A DNA stretch of 64,000 nt from Phaeosaccion multiseriatum (Eukaryota > Protista > Ochrophyta, other classes). A model generated the notes under the pieces. It was given only the letters and a program-made list of their open reading frames with translations. It was not told the DNA's origin and did no database searches. The stretch is taken from assembly GCA_965112735.1 (NCBI GenBank), contig OZ218951.1, forward strand, positions 62,001 through 126,000. The letters run 5' to 3'. Position numbers and translations under genes: made by a program. This document shows positions 28,953 to 64,000 of this stretch, in pieces. Numbering within the stretch: the stretch's first letter is position 1; the number at the start of each line of letters is the position of its first letter.

Positions 28953-30683
28953 ATGGATTCCTACGTGGACTTTATAGCGGGCTGGGTGAGGTACGCCAAC
29001 TTTTGTCTCCTCCCTGTCCCACCTCCACTCTCACTCGCTCCGCGAATTGTGCCTGCCCTCCTTCTCACGCCTTTCGCCAGTGGAGGGGCGGGGCTCCTCG
29101 CCACGCAGCCCTTCGACGGGGTGCTCGTCCGCCTGCAGCAGCCCAAGATGGCTGCGCTGGGGCTACGCCGTGGCTTTTCAGAGTCTTTCACGCGGGCACG
29201 CAGCACCGGACTGTTCCAGGGCCTGTGGCCTATGGTGCTGAGGTGAGGGCACCTAAATGCGGCGCGGGGGAGTGCTCATGATCGCTACGGGCTGAGGCTG
29301 GGTGCTGGTGGGAACGAGAGCAGTCTTTCTTCTCACCTGCCATGTCTTCTTGCCCCTCTCGCTTCCCGCGGCTGCTATTGCTATTGCTGCTGTCATGTGG
29401 TGACTGCAGCGTGCCCCTTCAAAACGCAATTCTCTTCGCCGGCTTTGGCGTGGGCAAGAGCCTGGTGTCGGAGAAGGGCGAGCTGCTGCCCGTGTTTGCC
29501 GGGGGGTGCGCCGGGGGCTTCCTGCAGAGTTTCGTCATGAGCCCCGTGGAGCTTGTCAAGATCAGGGCTCAGCTCGGGCAGCAGGAGGGAGGTGAGTTGG
29601 GAGTGGGAGGCAGTCCCAAAGGGGCTTCGAAGACGACTGCGACGGTCTTGGATCGATCTGATGATGGGCTCCAGTCGGCTCCACACCCCGAAACGTGCCC
29701 TTCACCTCCTCCTCTTTTGCTGTCCCTCTATGACCGACCCAGGTACTTCGATGCTGCAGCGCTTCCAGAGCGAGATTGGAGCGAGAAGGATATTCACGGG
29801 CCTCGCCCCCACCCTTGGGAGGGACGGTGCGTCTTGGAGGAGGGCGTGGCATGAGTGAAGCAGCCGCAGAGCAGTCGGCCTCAACAAGCATGTGCAGGCA
29901 GTCTCGTCCTTGAACAATGGAAGTATTGTACGTGCCTCTGACAGAGCTCCCCTCCCCTGCCCCTCCCCGTCCCTTGCCCCTCTCTGTGTGCACAGTGCTG
30001 CCCCACGGGGTGTGGTTCGCCGCCTACGAGTTCCTCAAGGGCAAGCTCGGTGCGTGAGATAGAGAGAGACGGAGAGAGAAGGCTACCTTGTCTGCTGCCT
30101 GATCCTATTCTCAAGCGGAGTTTTGACTTACGCACCACGCGCCCCCTCACCCCCATTCCCTCTGTTGCGCAGCGGATCAGGGCGCCGCCGGACAAGTGGC
30201 GTCAGGCGCAGGGGCCGCCACGGTGAGTGACATGGCGAGAGGCAGTTCTGGCGATACGATGACCCGTCAGCTGTTGAATCCTTGCTGACCCCTTGTCGAC
30301 TCCTTGTGCCCCTCGTGTGCTCCTCTCCTCTTGTAAAGGTTGCGTGGGTGGTGGGGTATCCCTTCGACGTCATCAAGACGCGAATGCAGTCTCAGCTGGG
30401 TGGAACAGCCGCAGCAGAAGGGGCATCAGCAGGGGCTTCGGCGGGAGGGAAAGTAGGAGCAGCAGCAGCAGGAGGAGGAGGAGCTACAGCAGGGGCAGCA
30501 GCGACCGCAGGGACGGAGGGCGGGGGTAAGGGCATGCTGGCTGTGGCGGGGCGCATGCTGAGCGAGGAGGGCGGGGTGGTGTTCTGGAGGGGGCTTGACC
30601 TCAAGCTCATGCGGGCCGTGCCCATGAGTGTCATCGGCTTTTACGTCTACGAGGCCGCGGCACAGCTGCTCAGGGCCTCATAG
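28953..30683 (+). CDS. Mitochondrial carrier (SLC25; carnitine or basic-amino-acid carrier-like)
   Basis: Three Px[DE]xx[KR]x[RK]-type signatures (QPFDGVLVRLQ, SPVELVKIRAQ, YPFDVIKTRMQ), N-terminal DFIAGWVSG, C-terminal FWRGLDLKLMRAVP; multi-exon. Confidence 0.92.
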
Positions 30684-31080
30684 CTGCTTACTCAGGTCAT
30701 TTTGTCTCGCTTAGGCAGGGGGGTCACGGCAGACGGGTCACGGCAGACGGGGGGCCTAAGCGCGTACACAGGGCGACCGTTCAGTGGGGGGCCGAACTTA
30801 TCTTATTTTTTGTAGAGAAGGGGCCGACTGGACTTTATAGAGTTGTTACTGTTTCGAAAAAATACATATAAAATTGTGTCTCACAAAAGTTGATACTTAT
30901 GCACATGAAAGAAGCAGAGATGAGGAGAGCTGAGGCTCGACGGGGCAAAACACAAATCCCTTCCCCCCATCCCCCCGTCAGACTTTATATATACATATAT
31001 ATCTTCCTCACGCCGAGCACAAGGCGCGGGGCGGTGGCAGGGCGGCCGCGAGGGATGACGCCTCTTCAGTGCGCCAGCTC

Positions 31081-32172
31081 TCACGCTGGCGAAAGCGATG
31101 CTACCGGGGAGGCCTCCTCCTCCTCCTCGTCCTCGTCCTCCTTGTCTTTATTCTCTCTGAACCCCACAGTACTGAGGTACGTCTGCCAGAAGATCTGAAC
31201 GCCACTAGCATAGGTGGGGCGGATGTGAATGGGCACAAACGAGAAGCCAATGAAGTTGGCGATGGGCCACAGTTTGAGGTCGGTCGTCCACGTCTCAAAC
31301 AGCTTGGCCCTGACGTTCGCCTCGGCCGCTGCAAAGTCACCACCACTCGAGTACAGCGCCGACACTGACAGGTAGCTCACGGCCAGCTGAGGACCGAACA
31401 CGAGCTCATCGCACACAATCTTCTTGAGCACGGACACCGTGTCCACCCTGTGAGTGTGTGAGTGAGTGGGGAGGGGTGAGTGCGCGGGTGAGAGAGTGAA
31501 TGCGTCAGTGATTTGAGTGAGTGAGTGAGTGAGTGAGTGAGTGAGTGAGTGGGGTGAATGAGTGAGTGAGTGATTTGAGTGAGTGAGTGAGTGCGTGGGG
31601 TGAGTGAGTGAGTGAGTGAGTGCGTGGGGTGAGTGAGTGCGTGAGTAAGTGAGTGTGCGTGAGTGAGTGATTGAGTGAGTGAGTGAGCGAGCGAGTGAGC
31701 CAGCAAGTAAGTGACCTGGGGCTCACGATGCGGTCCAAAGCGCGGTACCAGTAGTGCATGAAGATACCGTTCTGCACGAGCCCCTGAGCGAGGAGAGCAT
31801 GCATCATGCAGGTAGGGAGGGGGGCAGGCCTGAGCCACAAATTGTGTACCATATCACTCCAGGAGCAATGATCTAAACTTTTAATGAGACTGCGAAATGG
31901 GGAAGTGTTGCAGCCAGCCCAGCCATATCTGTGCTCCTCACCAGACATCCCATCGTGAGCGTCCGCTTGGGATCCCACGCCCTGCTGTTGCTGGTGCTGC
32001 TGCCGCTCAGCTTCTTCTCCTCCGCCATCCTCTCCAGAGCCTGGGCAATCCCATCCCCGATGGAGAAGACAGTGAACCCCACACATGCATTGGCCGCGAG
32101 AGTGTGCTCTTTGTAGAAGGAAGCCACCTTGAGCCGGGCGGCCAGGAGCCGTGCTTTAATAAGGCTGCCCAT
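31081..32172 (-). CDS. Mpv17/PMP22 family membrane protein (3 exons)
   Basis: GDGIAQ, WDPKRT, HYWYRALDR, KKIVCDELVFGP and WPIANFIGFSFVPIHIRPTY...FWQTYLS motifs. Confidence 0.93.
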
Positions 32173-47063: not shown

Positions 47064-47575
47064 AGAGTGAGACCATTTGCGCTTGGTTTGCTCGCCGGGT
47101 CGATGGACTGCAGCCGCCGGCCTGACGCCTTGACGCGTCCCTCCGTCCCTCCTACCCTCCTTCCTCCTCCAGGGGCGAGCTGCCCCACTTCGCCGGCATC
47201 AACACGTTCATGAAGGCCCCCTTCGTGGAGGATATTAAGAAGTGCGGGGCATACGACGCCGCCGTGCTGGGCGTGCCCTTCGATGGAGGTAAGTGCGTGC
47301 GTGCACGGGTTGAGGGGCGAAGTAAGCAAGGCGACTTTAGATGCCCCTCCCTCCCCCCCTTCACACACTCCTGCTGCAACCAACCCTTCCCGCTTGTGTC
47401 GCCCCTCCCGCTCAGGCTGCACCTACCGCGCCGGCACGCGCTTCGGGCCACAGGGCATCCGCCGCATCTCTGCGCTGTACACGCCGTACCACTACGAGAA
47501 AGGTCCGTTGTGTCGAGAGCCTTGAGTGTGTGGGAGGGCGTGTCTGCTCGGAATCAATGTACTTGCGCTGCATTG
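47064..47575 (+). pseudogene. gdmH: Near-identical duplicated fragment of the guanidine hydrolase gene (end of intron 3, exon 4, intron 4, exon 5, start of intron 5)
   Basis: Matches 60581-61092 with only one difference that I noticed (ggaatc vs gggatc); introns are retained. Confidence 0.95.
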
Positions 47576-54067: not shown

Positions 54068-57000
54068 ATGGCGCAGTGCTTGCCCGAGGGAGATTTGGCC
54101 TCTTCTCTGGGACTTGGTAGCCTAGCGGAGGACTCCTGCTGCCAGGTGGGTGAGAGAAGCAAAGGGGGGTCGGCTCAACCCTTTCCCCCCTCTCTTTCTA
54201 CCAGGAGGCTGCTCATGTGGTTGACATGCATGTGTGGTCCTGGGGCCTGGGACCCTTCTTACGCCTCTAGCGCCCGTCCCCCGTCAACTACTATCGCAGT
54301 TCGAGGTGTGCGGCCTGCCATGTCCGGCGGTGTGGGAGCCGCGCTCGTCGTTGTCCGGCACTTATGGCGCTGCCGGTGAGTCGGGGTAATAGTCGGGGTA
54401 GTCGGGGTAATCCATGCATGGGGGTAGGAGCACTAATCAAAAATGCACCAGTAATTGGGGGGGGGGATGGAAGAGAGGGAGCAGGCAGTCAGTCCAGATC
54501 TAATGTTGCTCTCCTTGCTTGGCTGCGGCTTCGCTTCACTTGTTGCTCCGCTCCGGTTCTCGTTTCTTGCTTTCGCCTCCTCGCTCGTCCTGCGTGAACA
54601 TGCCATCCTGCCGCTCGCTCCTGGCTGGCTGCTGCCGTCCCTGCCGGCGCAGTCATTTGTGCGGTGCTCTTCTTCACCTGCCTGGGAATTGCCACCATGT
54701 TGAAGGTCAAGGGCAAAGGTACGTACAGAGTGTGGAATGTATTGCGTGTCCCATCAGTCAGCCCACACGCCCGCCTGTCGCGCCGTGCCTCCGGCCCTCT
54801 TCCCCCTCCAGCTGAGGAGTTCTTCGTGTGTGGGCGCTCTCTGCCCCTCTTCGTGGTGAGCCTCACTCTGGCCAGTCAGTCGCTCGACTCCAACGCCACG
54901 CTTGGGAATGCGGATCTTGCCTACAAGGTATGAACATGTTTTGCGCTGTGCCTCCTCGCTCCTCAGAAGTGCTTGTGGACTTCCCGAGTCTTGCTTGTCG
55001 TGGCACTGACGCCCCGGCTCCACCACCCCCTCTGCCCATACGCCTGTGCAGTTCCATTTTTGGGACGGAGCTGTGCTGCCCATCGGCTTGGGCCTCTCGC
55101 TGCTGCTGAATGCGATATTCCTGGCCCGAAAGATCCATGCCGTGCCGGGGGTCTTCACGCTTCCTGACGTCATCGGCCGCCATCACGGCCCCGCGGCGGA
55201 GGTGATTGTGTCCCTCATCGAGTGCGTGAGCTTCCTGTGCCTCCTCGCCGGAAACTTCGTGGGTGAGTGCCTGCGATTCTTTCTTTCTGCGTGCGTGTGC
55301 GTGCGTGCGTGTGCGTGCGTGCCTGTCTCTGGGATGAGGAGGGGGCCGTCCCGACACGTGCCACCAAAGACCCAGGCCTTCCGTGGAGCTTCCTCCGCCC
55401 CTGTCGCACTGCGCCTCCACCAGTCTCACCCCCGTCCTATCTCGCTCTCTCTCTCTCTACTCACAGGCATGGCCCGTATCTTTGAGTTTCTCTTCTCCGA
55501 CCTCAACAAGGGCGGCTCCGTCTTCCTCATCGCCATTCTCACCGCCCTGTACACGGGAGCAGGAGGTTTGTCTTGCAAGTCCCGTCATGCCTGTGTGCTG
55601 CCCTCTGTCCCTCACTCACGCGTGGGCCTCTCTGTCTATGCCTTTGCGTGTATCCTTGGCTCTGTTGGGGCACAGGTCTGTACTCTGTGGCCTACACCGA
55701 CGTCATCCAGGTCCGTCGGTGCTCTTTGCAAAGCACCAAGCAAGCAAGCAAGCGGGTCCTCCCTATCCTATTTTCGACACTCAAGACCCTCCCGTCCGCA
55801 CTCCTTGAAACTCAAACTGTCCTCGGAAACGCCCCTCCCTACCGCCCCTGCCTGCCCCTCTCTGCCCCTCTGTGTCAGGTGCTGATGGGCATCAGTGGCC
55901 TCATCGTCGCTGTTACCGTCATGATGAGCAAGCAGAACGATGACTTCCCAAGCCCCTCCGTTGGCTTCCCCGACTACGCCTACCCGCCCGACGGCGACGC
56001 CTGCGAGCTGTACAACGGCGTGCCGGGCACAGCTGACCCCGAGTCTTGTGTTTATAACTCGGAGGAGTTCGGCCCCGACGGCGTGGATAACGGCGCATAC
56101 CCGTACGGAGATAAGAAGGTGTTCAACGACGGCATGGAGGACTTCGACGCCTACGCACCCTTCCCTAACGCCATGTTCTTCAACTGGGCCACCATCTTCA
56201 TCCTCGGCTTCGGAAACCTCGCCGCGCTCGACTTCCAAGCCCGAGTCATGGTGAGGGATGTGTGTGCGTGTTTGTGTGTGTGTGTGTGTGCGTATGTGCA
56301 TGTGTGCGTGTGAGTGTGCGCGCGTGCGTGTTCGTGTGTACGTGTGTGTGTGCGTGTGTGTGTGTTTCAGACATGCCCGCATACTCGTATTGCTGCGGCT
56401 GAGCGGCCATTCTTGCCCCCCTTCGCGTGTGTACGCCCCTCCGTGTGTGCCCACGCCGCTCGACAGGCCTCCAAGACGGCCAAGATCGCTACCCTCGGCA
56501 ACCTCGTCGGCGCCGGTCTCACCTTTGGGGTAAGTTACTGAGGGAGTTGTTCACATCAGACCCCCCTTGCCGGGTGCGCTTACTTGCCCCCTTGTGTGCG
56601 TGACCACCCCCTTCAGGTGGGCATCCCCTTCGGGCTGCTGGCAGGTCTGTCTCGCCTGCACTACGGCCCTGATTCCCAGGTGAGTCCAGTTGCTTGGGCT
56701 GCCTACCTATGTACTTAAGTATCTCGCAGCTTGCCTCCGCCCCCCCGACAAGTGCCAGTGTCTCAACGCCCCCAACTCCTCCCCCGCTCTGTGCTGGACC
56801 CCTCCGCGCTCTTCCCCTCGACAATGCGATGACTTCCAACCCCTTCACCTTCCCCCGCGGGAGCAGTTCGCAGAGTTCGAGCCCAACACATGCTCGTCGC
56901 AGGTGCGTCTCACAGATGGCAGGGGGTGGTGTACGGGGCCTGTCGCTGTGCTGTGTCGACCTGTGGCCCTGACCTCTGCCTCCCCCACTCCGCTCCCCTC

Positions 57001-58892
57001 CCCTCCCCTCCCCTGTGATCAGATCGGCCTCCCGTCCTGCGCCCAGTGGCTGCCCGACAAGTTCGCCTTCCTCAGGCTTGGTGAGAAGAGAGCAGATCAA
57101 CACACACTCTTTTCTTGTCCTGAGGCACTTACCCTTACCGGCCGGCCGGTGCTGCAGAGGTGTCGACCCCATGGGCGGCCGTCTGAGAGAGAGGCTCCTC
57201 ATGCCTGACCTGCCCCTCCCCTCGCCCTGTCCCTCGCCCTGTCCCTCGCCCTGTCCCTCGCCCTGTCCCTCGCCCTCCCTCTCGCCCTGTGCTCAGTGAC
57301 GACGCAGTTCCCCACGTGGCTCGGGTGCTGGACCCTCATCGGAATCGTCGCCGCGTCCATGAGCACCAGGTGCGTCTTCTCCTCGCGGGTTCAAACACAG
57401 GGTTAGGGTCAAGGGAGGGAGGAGTGGCTCTTCTTCTCCATGAGCTGCGTGTCGGCTGAGCGCGGACCAGCCAGCCTGGTCAGAGAAGGCGAAAGTGCGT
57501 TGGTCGCGAAAGCGGCGTCCTCGCTCATCTCTCCTCTCTCCTCTCTCGCATAGTGTGGCTACTCACATCTCCATCCCTCTCCCTCCCTCCCTCCCTCCCT
57601 CCCTCCCTCCTCCCGCCCCTCTTGTGCATGGTGTGTCCTGCCTTGACTTGTGCAGTGATGGAGCCATCCTGGCCATCTCCACGGTTCTGAGCCACAACAT
57701 CGGCCGCAAGCTTCTGTCGGGCACCGCGGCGGGCAGGGAGAACATGGACAAGTACTTGCTGCTCATCGTCAGAGTCACCATCGTTGTAAGTGGAAGAGGG
57801 GAGCAGGGGTGTGCGTGCGTGCGTGCGGCTGTGTGGGACGGGAGAAGAAGGGATAGGATACACCCCCATCCCATCCATACGTGTGTACAACACCCGTTCT
57901 GAAACAGCCCCCCCCCTGCCCCTCCACGCTTCCCTCGCAGCCCGTAGTGATCATCGCTGCCGTCGTCGCCACGCTCTACAACGAGACAGGCTATCGTGAG
58001 TGCCGTAGTAGTCTCGTCGCGGACGGGGGGGGAGCGAGAGACAGCATGCCCACCGAGGCTTTTCACTTTGTTGGCCCTTGTCGACCGTGACAGTTACTTG
58101 CCCCTGCCCCATGCCCCGTGCACTGCCATCCCCTGTCCCCAAGTGCTCATCGTGGCCTTCGACATCGTCCTGGCCGGAGTGGTGCCCGCAATCTTCGCGT
58201 GCTTCTACGGCCGCAAGCTGTTCACCAACGGGGGCATCCTCGCGGGCATCATCGCAGGCAGTCTCACGCGCGTGGTGCTTGAGTACGCGCTGCCCAAGGA
58301 CGGCGACCTCGTGCTGCCCGTGGGCAACTTCTCCTACGGCTACGGAGATGCGCAGCCCGGCCTTCCCGAGTTCTTCGATGTACCTGCGGCCGAGCACTGG
58401 GACCCTAGCACCTGCGACCAGCCCAGGCTGGAGGACTGGACCGGCCTCGACAGGTGCGTTGCCTCTCGCCCCTGTCATCCCCTCCCTATTTCTCCCTCTG
58501 ATCCCCCTCCCACCCGTCCCCGTGCCGGCAGTCTGCTGTCTCCCGTGGTGAACATCGTGCTGGCGCTGATTTGGAGCCTCATCGAGAAGAGCACGGGCAA
58601 GTCTCTGTGGGGCTGCCTGCCCAAGTCCTGGGTGGAGCCGTCCAGTGCTTACGTAAGTGCCTACCTGCCTGCATCCCAGGCCCCCTCCAGGCCACCTCGC
58701 TCTTGTCCGCCCACCCATCGCAACCACACACCGTCACACTCACCCGCTTCCTTCCTCTCCCTTGCTGCCTGCCTTGTCCTCACGCAGTATGGCGAGGCCC
58801 ACGCCGGGAAGGAGAATGCCATCGCGGACATGGATGACACCAAGACCACCGATAAGCTGCGCACCAGCAACCACAGGACCGCCGCCATCTGA
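54068..58892 (+). CDS. Sodium:solute symporter (SSS/SLC5), SLC5A7/CHT1-like, with a Cys-rich N-terminus; candidate guanidine importer
   Basis: Spliced protein MAQCLPEG...DSCCQ|FEVCGLPCP...; EEFFVCGRSLPLFVVSLTLASQSLDSNATLG, FTLPDVIGRHHG, GG|LYSVAYTDVIQ, IVAASMST|SDGAILAISTVLSHNI; many TM segments; stop at 58890-58892. Confidence 0.9.
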
Positions 58893-59185
58893 GCGGGAAT
58901 GGAAGCGAAGCGATTCCCCCGGGGGAGGATCGAGCCGGCTCCACGGCTTTGTGCTACACATGGGCACGTGGAGAGTGGAGAGGGAAGAGAGCCTCTTTAA
59001 CTGTAAGGGGCCAGAGAGGGGTGGGGGCTGGCTGGTGCCAGGGTTGGACGTAGGTAGTTACTGTAGCTTATTGAGAGTGGTTTGTGGGTAAGGTAGGAAG
59101 TAGGTAGAGGTTCAAAATAGTGTCCGTCTTTAATGTAGAGTAGTAGTTTGAGCTCTTATAGGAGCTCATAGGCTACATTACAAGC

Positions 59186-59309: not shown

Positions 59310-60018
59310 ATCTATCGTAGTGAATATTGAATATTGCACCAGTAAATGGTCAATGAAAAGGTCAATATATGTATGTCAAGTGTTTTGGGTAAGCCCAACG
59401 GCCACAACATAATCAGTCCGTTCCCGTATTGTAGTCGACCCCTGACGTACTATCGACGCATTCTCGATAGCATGCTATCGGCCGCCGGCGATAGCAGATA
59501 CATCGAAGTAGCAGATAGCACGTCAGACGTCCGTCAAACTCGATCAAACACCCTTACCCTTGAAGCTGGCTGGCTGGTGCGGTGGAAGGAGTAGGAGGTT
59601 GGAGCAGAAAAAGTGAAAGATGGGTGGACGAGGAGAAGATACTAGAGATACCAGCGGTGTAGGGGGTGGAGGACTGGTAGAGGAAGGAGAGAAGGAGGAG
59701 TGTGGTGGATGTCAAGGTTCAAGGCGTATGAAAAGGGCAGCGCAAAAGGTGAGGAGCAGAGGCCTTGGCCTTCCCAACCATCCCAAAATATCCGTTTCTG
59801 ATCCATTTAAACCTGGCTGAGAAAGTTGAATGGGGAATAGACCCAAGAAGACTTTGTACAAAGAGTCAGTTCACGTCGGGAGGTGGGCGTGTGTGCGTGT
59901 GTGCGTGTGTGCGCACAGATACCCCCAGCTGGGAGGAAGGAGGAAAAAATCCGAAACTTCCAATTTTTACCTGCGAGCTGTGTGCGGCAACAACATACAA
60001 ATATTGAATATTGTCAAT
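59310..60018 (+). promoter_or_regulatory. gdmH upstream region with a CGATAG/CTATCG palindrome cluster, tandem GGTCAAT and a repeated AATATTGAATATTG
   Basis: CTATCG at 59450 and 59475, CGATAG at 59465 and 59489, AGATA(G) at 59496 and 59513; GGTCAAT at 59348 and 59360; 14-mer at 59323 and 60000. Function is inferred from position only. Confidence 0.4.
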
Positions 60019-63000
60019 ATGTGGTTTGCTTTGAGGACAGCACGCGCAGCGAGGAAGGCAGCTATCGGATCGGTTCGCCATCACCATCCAAGTCCTTTTG
60101 ACGGGAAAGGTGGAGACTTTGGCAAGACGAGGTGTGAATGAAGTGGGAGCTGCTCTGCTGTTAACAATATGCACAAACATATCTCTAAGCTGCTCCCTCG
60201 CTGCTTTCCGCCACTGAATCCCCTCCTTGGCAGGGGATGGAAGGCTGCGCAGGCCGAGAAGGAGCTCCCCCACACGGTCGCCGAGAGAGAGGCGAAGGAA
60301 GGTGAGCAGAGTGTTGAAACGAGCAAAGGGAATCGCGATTGCCTCTACTCGAGGAATCTGCTTCCCAAATCCCACCACTTTGTGTGCGTGGCTGTTTCCC
60401 TCCCGTGCAGGCCTGGAGCTCGGGCTGCCCGGAGCCAGCAGCATCGAGGACAGGACCATCCCCACCTTCTCCAGGTAGGTCGTTTGAGACGAGAGGCAGG
60501 GCTCCTTGCTTTGGACCGAGAGGGGGAGAGGCAAACAAAGAGAGAGAGAGAGAGAAATATAGGCATACAAACAAACAGAAAGAGTGAGACCATTTGCGCT
60601 TGGTTTGCTCGCCGGGTCGATGGACTGCAGCCGCCGGCCTGACGCCTTGACGCGTCCCTCCGTCCCTCCTACCCTCCTTCCTCCTCCAGGGGCGAGCTGC
60701 CCCACTTCGCCGGCATCAACACGTTCATGAAGGCCCCCTTCGTGGAGGATATTAAGAAGTGCGGGGCATACGACGCCGCCGTGCTGGGCGTGCCCTTCGA
60801 TGGAGGTAAGTGCGTGCGTGCACGGGTTGAGGGGCGAAGTAAGCAAGGCGACTTTAGATGCCCCTCCCTCCCCCCCTTCACACACTCCTGCTGCAACCAA
60901 CCCTTCCCGCTTGTGTCGCCCCTCCCGCTCAGGCTGCACCTACCGCGCCGGCACGCGCTTCGGGCCACAGGGCATCCGCCGCATCTCTGCGCTGTACACG
61001 CCGTACCACTACGAGAAAGGTCCGTTGTGTCGAGAGCCTTGAGTGTGTGGGAGGGCGTGTCTGCTCGGGATCAATGTACTTGCGCTGCATTGCTTGCAAG
61101 TGAATCGGGGGGAGGAGAGGGTGTGCGTGCGTGCGAGCGTGCTTTCACGAGTGGGCGTCTCCTCTCCGTGAGACCACTCCGTCGGGCGCCCCTCTTCCTG
61201 TCTTGGCCTCCACCTTTCAGGAAATAAGGAAGGGGGAATCAGTCCCTCGATGACAGCCGGGCTGTAACGGCTGTAGCTTCGCTCCTTAAATCCATCCAGA
61301 GACACTAATCCCACTCTCATCCTTAGATGCATCCCAAAGCCATATCCATCCATCCAGAGGCACACAAAGACAAACACGTGTCCCGAATGTGAGGAGGCTT
61401 ATGAAAAGTGGGGTGTATGTGTGTGTGTGCACCGCCAGCGGCCAGACAGACACGTGTTGCTTCCGCCCCTGACCCCTGACGCCCCTCTCACCCCTGACCC
61501 CTGACACCAGGCATTGACCTCCGCGAGGAGATGACCCTGTGCGACGTAGGCGACGTGTTCACCATCCCCGCCAACATCGAGAAGACGTTCGACCAGATCT
61601 CCAACGCCGTGTCCTACGTGGCGGCCTCGGGGGCCATGCCCATCATCATGGGCGGGGACCACAGGTAAGCGGTGCAAGGTGAGACATGAGAGGAAGTGTT
61701 CTTTGGGATGAAAAACTCCTCCCCTCACTTCCATTTTCAGTTTCAGTTTACTGACCGGACCATGGATTGCCATCTGTTTGGAGTACCGTGCTGACTTTAC
61801 ACCTATCCTTGCCTTGCCTGCTCCGCTCTGCAGCATCGGCTACCCCACTGTACGCGGCATCGCCTCGGTCACCACCAAGGTGAGAACAAGCACACGGCAC
61901 ACGGCACACGAAGGAGACAAGAGGCGGCCCGAGGGTGCCATGCGCGTTGCCCAGATCGCACTGAGCTCGCTACAACTCACTGGCCACGGACTGCGAAGCG
62001 TCCTCCCTTTCACCGCCCTTGGCCCTCCCTCCCTCAGCAGTCTAGCCCCGCTCCTCCCCCCCCTCGCCCTTCCTGCCCACCCAGAAAATTGGCATCATTC
62101 ACATCGACCGCCACGCGGACATCCAGGAGAAGGACCTTGACGAGCGCATGCACACGACGCCCTACTTCCACGCCACCAACATCCCCAACGTGCCCGCCAA
62201 GAACCTCGTGCAGATCGGCATCGGGGGCTGGCAGGTCAGTGCCTCGTGTCAGGCAGGCACTCAGTCAGTCAGTCAGTCAGGCAGTCAGGCAGTCAGTCAG
62301 GCAGTCAGTCAGTCGGTCAATCACTCACTCACTCGCTCACTCATTCAGTCATATTCAGTCAGTCAGTCAGTCGGTCACTCACTCATTCAGCCACTCATTC
62401 AGTCACTCATTCAGTCAGTCAGTCAGTTGGTCAGTCAGTCATTTAGTCAGTCGCTCAGTCGGTCAGGCAGGCCTGTGAGGCTTTTTCTTTGTCTTCCTCT
62501 CCTCTCTATTTCTCTACGTGATGCTCTCTCTCTTGCATTTCTATTTCTCTCTAGTCCTGCCCCCCCCAGTGTTGCTCAGGCCGTGTGCCCCTAACGTGGT
62601 CTCTGTACTGCCCCGTATGCCTCTACTCTGTCTCATCTACTGCCCATTTGCCTCTGCTCAGGTGCCCCGCGCTGCCGTACCCAACATGCGAGACCGCTTC
62701 ACCAACATCTTCACCATGCAGGACCTCGACGACCTCGGCCTGGACAAGGTACTTCTTACGTATGAGTGTGTATGTGTCGTGTGTATGTGTGTGAGTGTGC
62801 ATGTGTGTGTATGTGTGAATGTGCATGTGTGTGTATATGTGTCGTGTGCATGTGTGTGTGTACGTGTGTGAGTGTGCATGTGTGTGTATGTGTGTGTGCT
62901 TTCGTGTAGGTAGAGGAGAGCCTTGCCAGTGACGCATAAGGTCTGCCCTCCCTACTGCGGGACTTCGCTGCCTTCGACACATGTCGCTGAATCTTGCTTG

Positions 63001-64000
63001 CTACCCTGGGGCCTCACACACCGCTCAACACACACACACACACACACACACTCCACACAACACACAACACAAAAGGTGATCGAGATGGCTCTCGAGGCGG
63101 CGTGGGACGGCGTTGACGCGGTGTACCTCTCCTTCGATATCGACAGCTTGGACGCAGGGTGAGTGAGCTCTTCTTGCCTCCCTCTGTCTCTTCTGTGTCC
63201 CGTGCCCTGTCTGGGGACGACGCTGCCCTTGCTCCTCGCTCCTCTCACACCACACGCATCCCGTCCCCTGCCACCCCCTGCCACCCTCTGCCACCCCCTG
63301 CCACCCCCTGCCACCCCCTGCCATCCCCTGCCACCCCCTGCCATCCCCTGCCACCCCCTGCCATCCCCTGCCACCCTCTGCCATCCCCTGCCACCCCCTG
63401 CCATCCCCTGCCACCCCCTGCCACCCCCTGCCATCCCCTGCCATCCCCTGCCATCCCCTGCCATCCCCTGTCATGGACGACCACAGTTTCGTGCCCGGCA
63501 CCGGCTGGCCAGAGCCTGGGGGCTTGATGCCGAGAGAGGCGCACAAGATCGTCGGAGGAGTGGCCAAGGAAGGTGAGAGGGTCAGACAGTCACAGGAGTG
63601 CCCCAAGGAGGATGGGAGGAGAGGAAAGAGAGGGTGGAGGGGGACGGCGGTTTGAGACGACGAGATCGATATCGCTAGGCTTGTGTCTCATGTGACGGTG
63701 CCGCCTGCGGCCTCCGCCGTGCTTCTCTGATGCCCCCCCCTTTCCCTTCCTCCCCAGGCCTGTGCGGCATGGAGCTTGTGGAGGTGTCTCCCCCCTACGA
63801 CGTGGCTGACACCACCTCGCTGCAGGTAAGTGAAGTGGGGAGAAAGGGGGATGAGTAAGTCAGTGAGGAGAAGGTGACAATCCATGTAAGCCAAGCGCCC
63901 TTCCTCACTGTGCATGCACCACTGCTGCATCCCCCCTGCTGCATCCACCCTGCTGCATCCACCTAGGGCCTGCGAGTTATCGTGGAGACGATGGGGGCTC
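60019..64000 (+). CDS. gdmH: Guanidine hydrolase (GdmH/Sll1077-like, arginase/ureohydrolase family) with a putative mitochondrial presequence; 13 or more exons, 3' end beyond the window
   Basis: Exons 60019-60131, 60234-60301, 60411-60474, 60690-60805, 60933-61019, 61511-61664, 61834-61879, 62085-62234, 62662-62748, 63076-63158, 63487-63572, 63758-63825 and 63967 onward. They give IEDRTIPTFSRGELPHFAGINTFMKAP, GCTYRAGTRFGPQGIRRISALY, GGDHS, DRHAD, DERMHT, GIGGWQVPR, SFDID, FVPGTGWPEPGG and VEVSPPYD. Confidence 0.9.
63264..63470. repeat. 10-bp minisatellite CCA(C/T)CCCCTG, ~20 copies, inside gdmH intron 10
   Basis: Seen directly. Confidence 0.95.

Follow-up and report, generated by a model that had tools for sequence, protein, structure and literature searches.

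A GdmH-type ureohydrolase gene of the alga Phaeosaccion multiseriatum with a leader of mitochondrial presequence composition

The window analyzed here is the whole stretch of 64,000 nucleotides of Phaeosaccion multiseriatum DNA under study. Positions 60019-64000 of its + strand carry a gene which, by sequence comparison, encodes a close orthologue of Synechocystis GdmH and of the Nitrospira inopinata guanidinase. Taken as a whole, the data are best explained, with a probability of about 0.6, by an ancient GdmH-type ureohydrolase bearing a recomposed, matrix-type presequence. The gene is real and nuclear, of an ordinary organelle type, and belongs to a known enzyme family, of which it is a new member. 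To our knowledge, guanidine hydrolase has so far been described only in bacteria (Synechocystis and comammox Nitrospira), and a literature search found no paper tying this enzyme to eukaryotic algae.

The homology-guided model of the gene comprises 13 exons and 12 introns within the window. All 12 introns have GT-AG borders and consistent phases, in agreement with a previous sequence-only reading of this DNA, which had counted at least 12. The open reading frame from 60019 translates to MWFALRTARAARKAAIGSVRHHHP... Exon 1 (60019-60131, 113 nt) consists of 37 codons and two bases, has a phase 2 end and terminates in GAG ahead of the donor gtgtga; it extends beyond the 24 codons after which the sequence-only reading had made it stop. 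It encodes an HHPSPFD segment and a short insertion, a form common to the brown-algal orthologues. Exon 2 (60234-60301) encodes G-W-K-A-A-Q-A-E..., with the conserved GW motif, and the model also includes exons 3 (60411-60474), 7 (61834-61879) and 9 (62662-62748). Exon 13 (63967-64000) is truncated by the end of the window, about 21 residues being absent by comparison with Ectocarpus. From about residue 39 onward, the spliced product aligns without gaps with the Ectocarpus orthologue. The two genes share only one of the 12 intron positions, that of the intron following exon 8 (the Ectocarpus gene has 9 introns).

As the frame is intact through the 13 exons, a pseudogene was ruled out. Bacterial contamination was likewise ruled out by the introns and by the synteny with the Ectocarpus locus, Mito_carr and Mpv17 neighbours being common to both. 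In local BLAST comparisons over the whole window, one weak, low-complexity tblastx row at 63275-63470 was disregarded. Four sequencing runs, all from one study, contain the locus; intron makes up about 73% of the stretch searched, and 95-97% of its words are present in them, so that these runs are DNA-like; none is recorded as RNA. The leader is also present in a transcript-like, spliced contig (1.9 kb) from a brown-alga-like relative.

The candidate presequence corresponds to codons 1-19 (MWFALRTARAARKAAIGSV, 60019-60075, + strand), which contain no acidic and four basic residues (net charge +4) and are rich in Ala, Leu and Ser. Residues 1-24 include 4 Arg, 1 Lys and 6 Ala, with no Asp or Glu, the first acidic residue being D28; the earlier description of this segment as Arg/Ala-rich and free of acidic residues was thus correct. 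The 20-residue stretch ending at R20 likewise lacks Asp and Glu and has a net charge of +5 and an Ala/Leu/Ser fraction of 0.40. When calculated at 100 degrees over an 11-residue window (a simple calculation, not a trained predictor), the hydrophobic moment reaches a maximum of 0.67 at residues 4-14. In its composition, the leader matches a mitochondrial presequence. On the basis of the D+E frequency of the mature part (0.138), the absence of acidic residues has a chance probability of about 0.06 over 19 residues and about 0.02 over 27, so that the window alone is weak evidence; it is the comparison with orthologues that carries the weight.

With merely five uncharged residues ahead of R6, the leader has no signal-peptide hydrophobic core. 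A plastid leader was ruled out because the signal peptide is absent.

With the R20-H-H-H-P24 segment (60076-60090, + strand) begins the part of the protein that bacterial homologues also conserve. The segment aligns with an R-x-H-H-P motif showing hardly any variation among homologues from bacteria and eukaryotes: across 56 sequences, conservation of the corresponding Ectocarpus residues (R32, H34, H35 and P36) is 90% or higher. It probably belongs to the N-terminal arm of the mature enzyme. The sequence-only reading had placed the whole 24-residue peptide ahead of the bacterial-like region; this holds for residues 1-19, whereas R20-P24 (RHHHP) falls within the conserved bacterial motif. Moreover, the N-terminal tail of the nearest bacterial homologues has a median length of 23 residues, against 20 here, and only when set against cyanobacterial GdmH, which is shorter, does the leader count as an extension. 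A presequence in the form of an extension absent from non-targeted homologues was therefore not found, the nearest bacterial tails being equally long. Since RHHHP lies in the conserved motif and the bacterial tails are of the same length, the leader is, as judged from these alignments, no add-on, but a tail of altered composition, about 19 residues long, in place of an equally long basic bacterial one. As the leader sits where bacterial homologues also carry a basic tail, its basicity is partly inherited, an observation that runs against a mitochondrial reading.

The composition of this tail differs between the two groups. Median values were 0 acidic residues, a net charge of +6, an Ala/Leu/Ser fraction of 0.33 and a moment of 0.67 for the eukaryotic leaders (n=80), and 3, +3, 0.14 and 0.47, respectively, for the bacterial tails (n=148). 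The leader of the window (0, +5, 0.40 and 0.67) sits at the eukaryotic medians. Tails devoid of any acidic residue represented 71% of the eukaryotic sequences and 1.4% of the bacterial ones. In a redundancy-reduced set (25 eukaryotic versus only 6 bacterial rows), the contrast was smaller, with 0.034 versus 0.076 acidic residues per position. The claim of a mitochondrial-type presequence is consequently sustained by composition, amphipathicity and the similar leaders of the orthologues, but not in the sense of an added segment.

The closest bacterial counterparts considered are uncharacterized alphaproteobacterial "agmatinase family proteins" of about 414 residues (Yoonia, Jannaschia, and a Limimaricola plasmid, NZ_CP139692, on which the gene adjoins urea-type ABC transporter genes). 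They are 66-72% identical to the algal protein over nearly the full length, are co-linear with it from residue 7-20 or so, and have the R-x-HHP...GW arm in common with it. Their genes, however, are intronless, and their motif reads HHP-D-[FL] instead of the eukaryotic HHP-[DSN]-P; Asp/Glu, His and Pro occur in their tails, which are less strongly amphipathic.

From these comparisons, targeting of the enzyme to mitochondria by its leader appears rather likely. The guanidinium cation is expected, from general bioenergetics, to accumulate in the matrix along the membrane potential, which makes a matrix location sensible. MPP sites are of the R-2, R-3 and R-10 types, and presequences typically measure 20-60 residues. 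In the algal protein, the sole candidate Arg-based MPP cleavage context is the Arg of R-x-HHP, which is also conserved in bacteria; the leader, of about 19 residues, is at the short end of the range. For the Ectocarpus orthologue, AlphaFold2 gave a model with a mean pLDDT of 72.8, but of only about 46-54 for residues 1-50, which is thus silent on where the ordered enzyme begins.

The shortness of the leader also fits a cytosolic enzyme, in which the 19 residues would be the variable basic tail of the lineage preceding the R-x-HHP arm and would be retained on the mature protein. We consider this unlikely, although it is the alternative with most in its favour. The bacterial tails, which are equally long, are also Arg-rich, and some of them (Bauldia-type and P0105, for example) are nearly as presequence-like as the algal leader. 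In addition, a marine eukaryotic lineage (L011/L016) seems to start with a leader of just 11 residues, none of them basic, provided that no exon further upstream escaped detection, and the N-terminal extension that distinguishes the N. inopinata guanidinase from Sll1077 is an ordered structural element packing on the neighbouring subunit (PMC11410670); this extension contains neither the HHP motif nor a presequence-like tail. Against a mere retained tail, on the other hand, stands the systematic shift of the eukaryotic leaders, which have lost Asp, Glu and His, have gained Ala, Leu and Ser and show a higher helical moment. Furthermore, these leaders vary in length (16-60 residues) and are highly variable in sequence while their composition is kept, as is typical of targeting peptides.

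The mitochondrial reading further supposes that the start codon is correctly placed. Were it mis-set, an unseen upstream exon could lengthen the presequence or contribute a signal peptide for plastid or ER routing. This possibility arises from the brown-algal leaders, which are 12 residues longer, from the upstream extensions present in some gene models of L016 relatives and from the lack of an RNA run among the four runs containing the locus. It is nevertheless improbable. The in-frame stop preceding the ATG at 60019 lies 39 codons upstream (59899-59901), no other in-frame ATG occurs between the two, position -3 is an A, and the start aligns with that of Ectocarpus (M-x-F-x-L-R). The upstream + strand gene is apparently only about 1 kb away, its 3' end being placed from ORF fragments alone. 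Finally, none of the eukaryotic orthologues examined has a signal-peptide-like start. As to the identity of the upstream gene, a Pfam scan of the long ORFs and ORF fragments in that region gave no matches.

In order to assign the enzyme, similarity searches were run with single-exon translations or with orthologues rather than with the whole spliced product. The arginase/ureohydrolase fold (PF00491) was matched by seven of the eight exon translations scanned, at successive profile positions from 15 to 267. The metal-ligand motifs are all intact in the spliced product: GGDHS, with GGDH at the end of exon 6 (61511-61664), DRHAD in exon 8 (62085-62234) and SFDID in exon 10 (63076-63158); none of these columns varies among 56 homologues. 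The residues conferring guanidine specificity are Thr97 and Trp305 in Synechocystis and Thr105, His222, Trp313 and Glu344 in N. inopinata (PMC11410670). Aligned with these positions are C-T-Y-R in exon 5 (60933-61019), whose second residue is equivalent to Thr97, E-R-M-H in exon 8 (His222), G-T-G-W-P in exon 11 (63487-63572), where G-T-G-W-P-E-P-G-G includes the Trp305 equivalent, and E-L-V-E-V in exon 12 (63758-63825), where E-L-V-E-V-S-P-P-Y-D includes that of Glu344. All of the N. inopinata positions thus have their equivalents in the algal protein, and T139, H255, W346 and E376 (Ectocarpus numbering) are invariant across the 56 homologues.

When exon 8 was compared with the PDB, only the two GdmH-type enzymes were matched, namely the N. 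inopinata guanidinase (9FEK, E 1e-25, about 84% identity) and Synechocystis GdmH (7ESR/7OI1, E 3e-23, about 80%). Exon 4 (GELPHFAGINTF..., 60690-60805) behaved in the same way, with 65.5 bits (E 9e-18, about 79% identity) to 9FEK. The Ectocarpus orthologue (P0225) scored 536 bits to the Synechocystis guanidinase and 524 bits to the other one, and at most 174 bits to every other characterized ureohydrolase (174 for guanidinobutyrase, 111-132 for agmatinases). The encoded ureohydrolase would therefore most likely hydrolyse free guanidine to urea and ammonium; within the HHP-type subclade, the literature search found no enzyme assay, whether for bacteria or for eukaryotes. That it is a true SpeB-like agmatinase, converting agmatine to putrescine and urea in polyamine and urea-cycle metabolism, is highly improbable: the orthologues are so labelled in NCBI, UniProt and JGI records and an "agmatinase" figures in papers on the diatom urea cycle (PMC5156380, PMC7542463), but the solved agmatinases are far less similar than the guanidinases (see the scores above), the agmatinase equivalog cut-offs (174.3 for TIGR01230 and 302 for PRK02190) are reached neither by Ectocarpus (153.3 and 204.9) nor by the bacterial P0033 (174.2 and 215.8), the pocket-closing Thr and Trp that give guanidine specificity are invariant (PMC11410670), and Sll1077 itself was once mis-annotated as agmatinase (PMC12186494, PMC12623156). 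The gene is probably mis-annotated in this way across stramenopiles.

The orthologues proper of the algal gene include those of Ectocarpus sp. CCAP 1310/34, Chaetoceros tenuissimus, Fistulifera solaris, Seminavis robusta and Diacronema lutheri, among others. These ochrophyte and haptophyte "agmatinases" form one clade with the algal gene and carry presequence-like leaders; identity ranges from 73 to 85% across them and is about 83-85% to the brown-algal and Phaeothamnion orthologues. In a tree rooted on the HHP-less type, the sequence of the window pairs with Ectocarpus (support 100/99), and a 99/92 branch has all eukaryotic rows on the same side, embedded among bacterial ones. By its 12 introns, its synteny with Ectocarpus and its position among bacteria in this tree, the gene is judged to be bacterial-derived and fully eukaryotised. 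The same three lines of evidence support the earlier claim of a fully domesticated bacterial gene, except that domestication is not particular to this genome: as the comparisons indicate, it is old and common to diatoms, brown algae, Phaeothamnion and haptophytes.

Synechocystis sp. PCC 6803 GdmH (Sll1077), a Ni2+-dependent member of the same ureohydrolase subfamily that retains the metal ligands found here, lacks the R-x-HHP segment and the leader, the alignment beginning near the G-W motif. Its gene is co-transcribed with the ghaA/ghaB Ni maturase genes and those of an ABC importer, a guanidine riboswitch and NtcA controlling expression (PMC12704784), whereas the algal gene is nuclear, spliced and monocistronic and has no recognizable chaperone gene nearby. 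The N. inopinata gene, for its part, is bacterial and riboswitch-controlled and adjoins an APC permease gene. With the E. coli proteins as the only queries, no HypA/HypB-like ORF was detected in the window (best E 0.55), as the sequence-only reading had stated, nor at about 80 related loci, among which 22 bacterial ones span at least 12 kb. A chaperone-free neighbourhood thus seems usual outside cyanobacteria. As the N. inopinata genome also lacks Ni chaperones (PMC11410670), the question of Ni loading is genuine, yet not peculiar to this alga.

The proposed scheme starts from one old bacterial-to-eukaryote acquisition, from a donor lineage that would already have possessed a basic N-terminal tail followed by R-x-H-H-P...G-W. 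In the eukaryotic clade, this tail would have been recomposed into an amphipathic helix by loss of acidic residues, His and Pro and by gain of Ala, Leu and Ser. In the present gene, a leader of about 19 residues (60019-60075) resembling a matrix-targeting presequence would then precede a conserved, probably structural, arm starting at R20. The protein would be imported through TOM/TIM, possibly processed near the conserved Arg, and assembled into a hexamer, its metal being loaded without a dedicated neighbouring HypA/HypB-type pair. The products would feed the mitochondrial enzymes that handle ammonium and urea. Human AGMAT/GDAH, a mitochondrial ureohydrolase long mis-annotated as agmatinase and imported by way of a predicted 35-residue transit peptide (PMC9772407), is a precedent for similar retargeting and mis-naming. 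It belongs, however, to another subfamily, acts on guanidino-acid substrates and is no GdmH orthologue.

The presequence and the introns are in themselves ordinary traits of a domesticated gene. What matters is that stramenopile and haptophyte algae possess, as an old and normal part of their nuclear genomes, an intron-bearing GdmH-type gene that retains all the specificity residues. Its product probably acts, to judge from its leader, in mitochondria. More tentatively, the whole ochrophyte/haptophyte "agmatinase" clade, possibly including the diatom urea-cycle "agmatinase", may be a mitochondrial guanidine hydrolase that is metal-loaded without dedicated GhaA/GhaB maturases. If this is true, major eukaryotic phytoplankton and kelps could use or detoxify guanidine in their mitochondria, with urea and ammonium entering the mitochondrial nitrogen network. 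If the enzymology holds, the "agmatinase" label used for nitrogen metabolism in diatoms and brown algae would have to be corrected, and guanidine would join urea as a source of reduced nitrogen, or as a toxin to be cleared, for major marine primary producers.

On the plus strand, an ATG at 60019 opens an exon reading MWFALRTARAARKAAIGSVRHHHPSPFDGKGGDFGKT, which is followed by a GT donor at 60132. A 13-exon model was built from in-frame segments and splice signals in this eukaryotic, GC-rich DNA (about 0.57-0.69). The exons, all on the plus strand, lie at 60019-60131, 60234-60301, 60411-60474, 60690-60805, 60933-61019, 61511-61664, 61834-61879, 62085-62234, 62662-62748, 63076-63158, 63487-63572, 63758-63825 and 63967-64000, the last one ending at the window end. 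All 12 introns are GT-AG, with consistent phases and lengths of 102-491 nt; the earlier count of at least 12 introns was therefore borne out, while exon 1 is longer than had been quoted and reaches 60131. The spliced product comprises 385 residues up to the window end, where it is short of about 21 C-terminal residues. From about residue 39 onwards, it aligned without gaps with the Ectocarpus orthologue, so that every splice junction was validated. Introns 8 and 9 are full of simple repeats (62250-62450, 62760-62900 and 63020-63070; tetranucleotide CAGT-type and GT/AC-type runs), and intron 10 contains a long short-unit repeat (63275-63470). A partial second gdmH copy, which spans exons 4-5 with their intervening intron (residues about 70-155), was observed at 47135-47519 (+); in its exon-5 part, the tblastn identities to the spliced protein equal those at the parent locus.

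Seven of the eight exon translations scanned matched the arginase family, at successive profile positions. When exon 8 was compared with the PDB, only two distinct sequences were matched: 9FEK, the guanidinase of N. inopinata (about 84% identity, E 1e-25), and 7ESR/7OI1, the GdmH of Synechocystis (about 80% identity, E 3e-23). Exon 4 gave the same pattern, with guanidinobutyrase far behind. The Ectocarpus orthologue scored 536 and 524 bits against the two guanidinases, versus 174 bits against guanidinobutyrase and 111-132 bits against true agmatinases. The residues to which guanidine specificity is attributed (Thr97/Trp305 in Synechocystis; Thr105, His222, Trp313 and Glu344 in N. inopinata; PMC11410670) all have equivalents in the window protein and, like the metal ligands, do not vary among 56 aligned homologues from bacteria and eukaryotes. 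The orthologues also score under the curated cut-offs of the NCBIfam agmatinase models. On account of these family matches, bit scores, specificity residues and sub-cut-off agmatinase scores, the gene is classed, by sequence, as a GdmH-type guanidine hydrolase.

Starting from the homologue on a Limimaricola plasmid (NZ_CP139692), about 7,500 relatives were gathered from bacteria; most of them are proteins of alphaproteobacteria, about 414 residues long. The window protein shares 66-72% identity with these relatives and is co-linear with them from residue ~7-20. Its R20-H-H-H-P24 segment aligns with their conserved R-x-H-H-P-D-[FL]...G-W-K motif, ahead of which the bacterial proteins carry about 20-25 additional residues. 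Compared with the nearest relatives in bacteria, the leader thus adds no net length; it is an extension relative only to cyanobacterial GdmH, which is shorter and whose alignment starts near the G-W motif. The sequence-only reading had placed its quoted peptide ahead of the bacterial-like region, which holds only in part, as R20-H-H-H-P24 falls inside the conserved bacterial motif. In N. inopinata, the N-terminal extension is an ordered arm packing on the neighbouring subunit (PMC11410670). By analogy with this arm, we infer that the mature enzyme would include the segment from R20 on, any presequence being limited to about 19 residues. In the AlphaFold2 model of the Ectocarpus protein, residues 1-50 are of low confidence, and the start of the ordered enzyme is not defined by it. 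For the Limimaricola gene itself (L001:5479-6612), RefSeq sets the start (377 aa) downstream of the conserved R-x-HHP...GW motif, and a GTG further upstream yields the 414-aa form found in relatives, so that the annotated protein probably begins too late. This gene is preceded by three urea-type ABC transporter genes and followed by two small ORFs without a Pfam family.

The leader, taken as the 20 residues up to R20, was compared with the residues before x-HHP in proteins starting with Met and carrying the motif. In these 80 eukaryotic and 148 bacterial tails, which are not independent rows, the median length was 27 and 23 residues, respectively; 71% and 1.4% of the tails had no acidic residue, as is the case for the window leader. 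Eukaryotic, bacterial and window values were, respectively, 0.016, 0.119 and 0 for acidic residues per residue, +6, +3 and +5 for net charge, 0.33, 0.14 and 0.40 for the Ala+Leu+Ser fraction, and 0.67, 0.47 and 0.67 for the maximal helical moment. On these measures, the window leader thus falls at the medians of the eukaryotes. In a redundancy-reduced set (25 vs 6 rows), the contrast shrank to 0.034 vs 0.076 acidic residues per residue, and two bacterial tails were nearly as basic; the lack of acidic residues over 19 residues of the leader, with P about 0.06, is only weakly significant taken alone. The mitochondrial-type presequence proposed earlier was thus supported by composition, but not as an extension over the nearest bacterial tails. 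Probably, the leader is a mitochondrial presequence that would have evolved inside an ancestral tail of equal length, and we put the probability of a mitochondrial localisation of the enzyme at roughly 0.6. With the tail length shared with bacteria on one side and the eukaryotic-type composition on the other, a cytosolic enzyme is possible, if rather unlikely. As no hydrophobic signal-peptide core was found in the window leader, plastid targeting also appears unlikely. A mis-set start is very improbable: ATG 60019 aligns with the Ectocarpus start (M-x-F-x-L-R), an in-frame stop lies 39 codons upstream with no ATG in between, and an A is present at -3. An intronless, transcript-like 1.9-kb contig from a sequencing run encodes the brown-alga-like orthologue including its leader; in this relative, the leader is thus probably part of a transcript spliced in the modelled way. 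Among the sequencing runs searched, no RNA run containing the window locus was found.

A metagenome scan queried with exon 8 returned mostly uninterrupted bacterial genes. Two marine metagenome contigs of an intron-poor eukaryote (L011 and L016) carry an orthologue interrupted by just one intron, about 70 nt long (L011:925-995, L016:987-1057) and located 1 nt from window intron 9, in phase 1 vs phase 0, at a K|V AAG|GT site. Their apparent start, MAAFASSGAQT before R-Y-HHP, is without basic residue; in related gene models, an MR[IV]F[RK]..L.RP start lies upstream. The eukaryotic form of the motif was found in the related loci L002, L004, L005 and L012. The eukaryotic clade emerged when the long exon 1 of L016, and subsequently the Ectocarpus protein, served as queries. 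It includes many diatoms (Chaetoceros, Skeletonema, Fistulifera, Seminavis, Fragilaria, Cylindrotheca and others), the brown algae Ectocarpus, Sphacelaria and Hapterophycus, Phaeothamnion and the haptophyte Diacronema. The window protein, itself absent from the searched protein database, shares 83-85% identity with its brown-algal and Phaeothamnion counterparts.

A maximum-likelihood tree was built from 42 rows under LG+C20 (unnamed rows classed by motif, with which every named row agrees). A branch supported at 99/92 had all eukaryotic rows on the same side, and the window and Ectocarpus proteins were paired at 100/99. The sister of the eukaryotes was an unnamed metagenomic lineage, the pair being split from alphaproteobacterial groups at 100/100. 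With the root placed on the HHP-less (comammox-like) type, which is an assumption, the eukaryotes are nested within bacteria. This topology would fit a single old bacterium-to-eukaryote transfer. The claim of a bacterial-derived, domesticated gene is thus sustained by the introns and by the nesting among bacteria, but domestication and leader change are not particular to P. multiseriatum: they probably go back to a single ancient event in a clade that extends across diatoms, brown algae and haptophytes.

The Ectocarpus gene (L082:10001-17383) has 10 exons and 9 introns. Although the two proteins are about 85% identical, these 9 introns and the 12 of the window have a single position in common, after G-I-G-G-W-Q in phase 0, which implies extensive intron turnover (gain, loss or sliding) since the lineages split. 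In Ectocarpus, gdmH stands head-to-head with a mitochondrial-carrier gene, about 265 bp apart, with an Mpv17/PMP22 gene adjoining (flank L082:787-9736). Window counterparts of both genes have exons at about 29.0-31.8 kb (29060-31800), inverted and about 28 kb off, among them a mitochondrial-carrier exon at 30531-30674 (+, PF00153) and an Mpv17/PMP22 exon at 31144-31299 (-, PF04117). Unlike the window, the Ectocarpus locus is without the upstream membrane-protein-like neighbour, a plus-strand gene at about 54100-59000 with ORF fragments, e.g. within 55010-55882 and 57951-58889; the fragments tried against Pfam matched no family, the gene having been proposed earlier to encode an SLC5A7-like symporter.

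The statement that no Ni chaperone gene is visible in the window was confirmed by tblastn with E. coli HypA and HypB (best E 0.55). With the same E. coli proteins only, about 80 related loci (L002-L081) gave no match reaching E 1e-4; these included bacterial loci spanning at least 12 kb, 11 of the HHP type and 11 of the comammox type. The N. inopinata genome is also reported to have no such chaperones (PMC11410670), and the chaperone neighbour therefore seems to be usually missing outside cyanobacteria, where ghaA/ghaB are co-transcribed with gdmH (PMC12704784). Its absence is not peculiar to P. multiseriatum, and chaperone linkage looks like a cyanobacterial speciality.

Nearly all eukaryotic members of the clade bear the database name 'agmatinase', and a literature search found no paper linking these algal proteins to guanidine hydrolysis. 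Judging from their sequences, the algal proteins so named in this clade are probably guanidine hydrolases, and it is on this basis that the locus is of interest.
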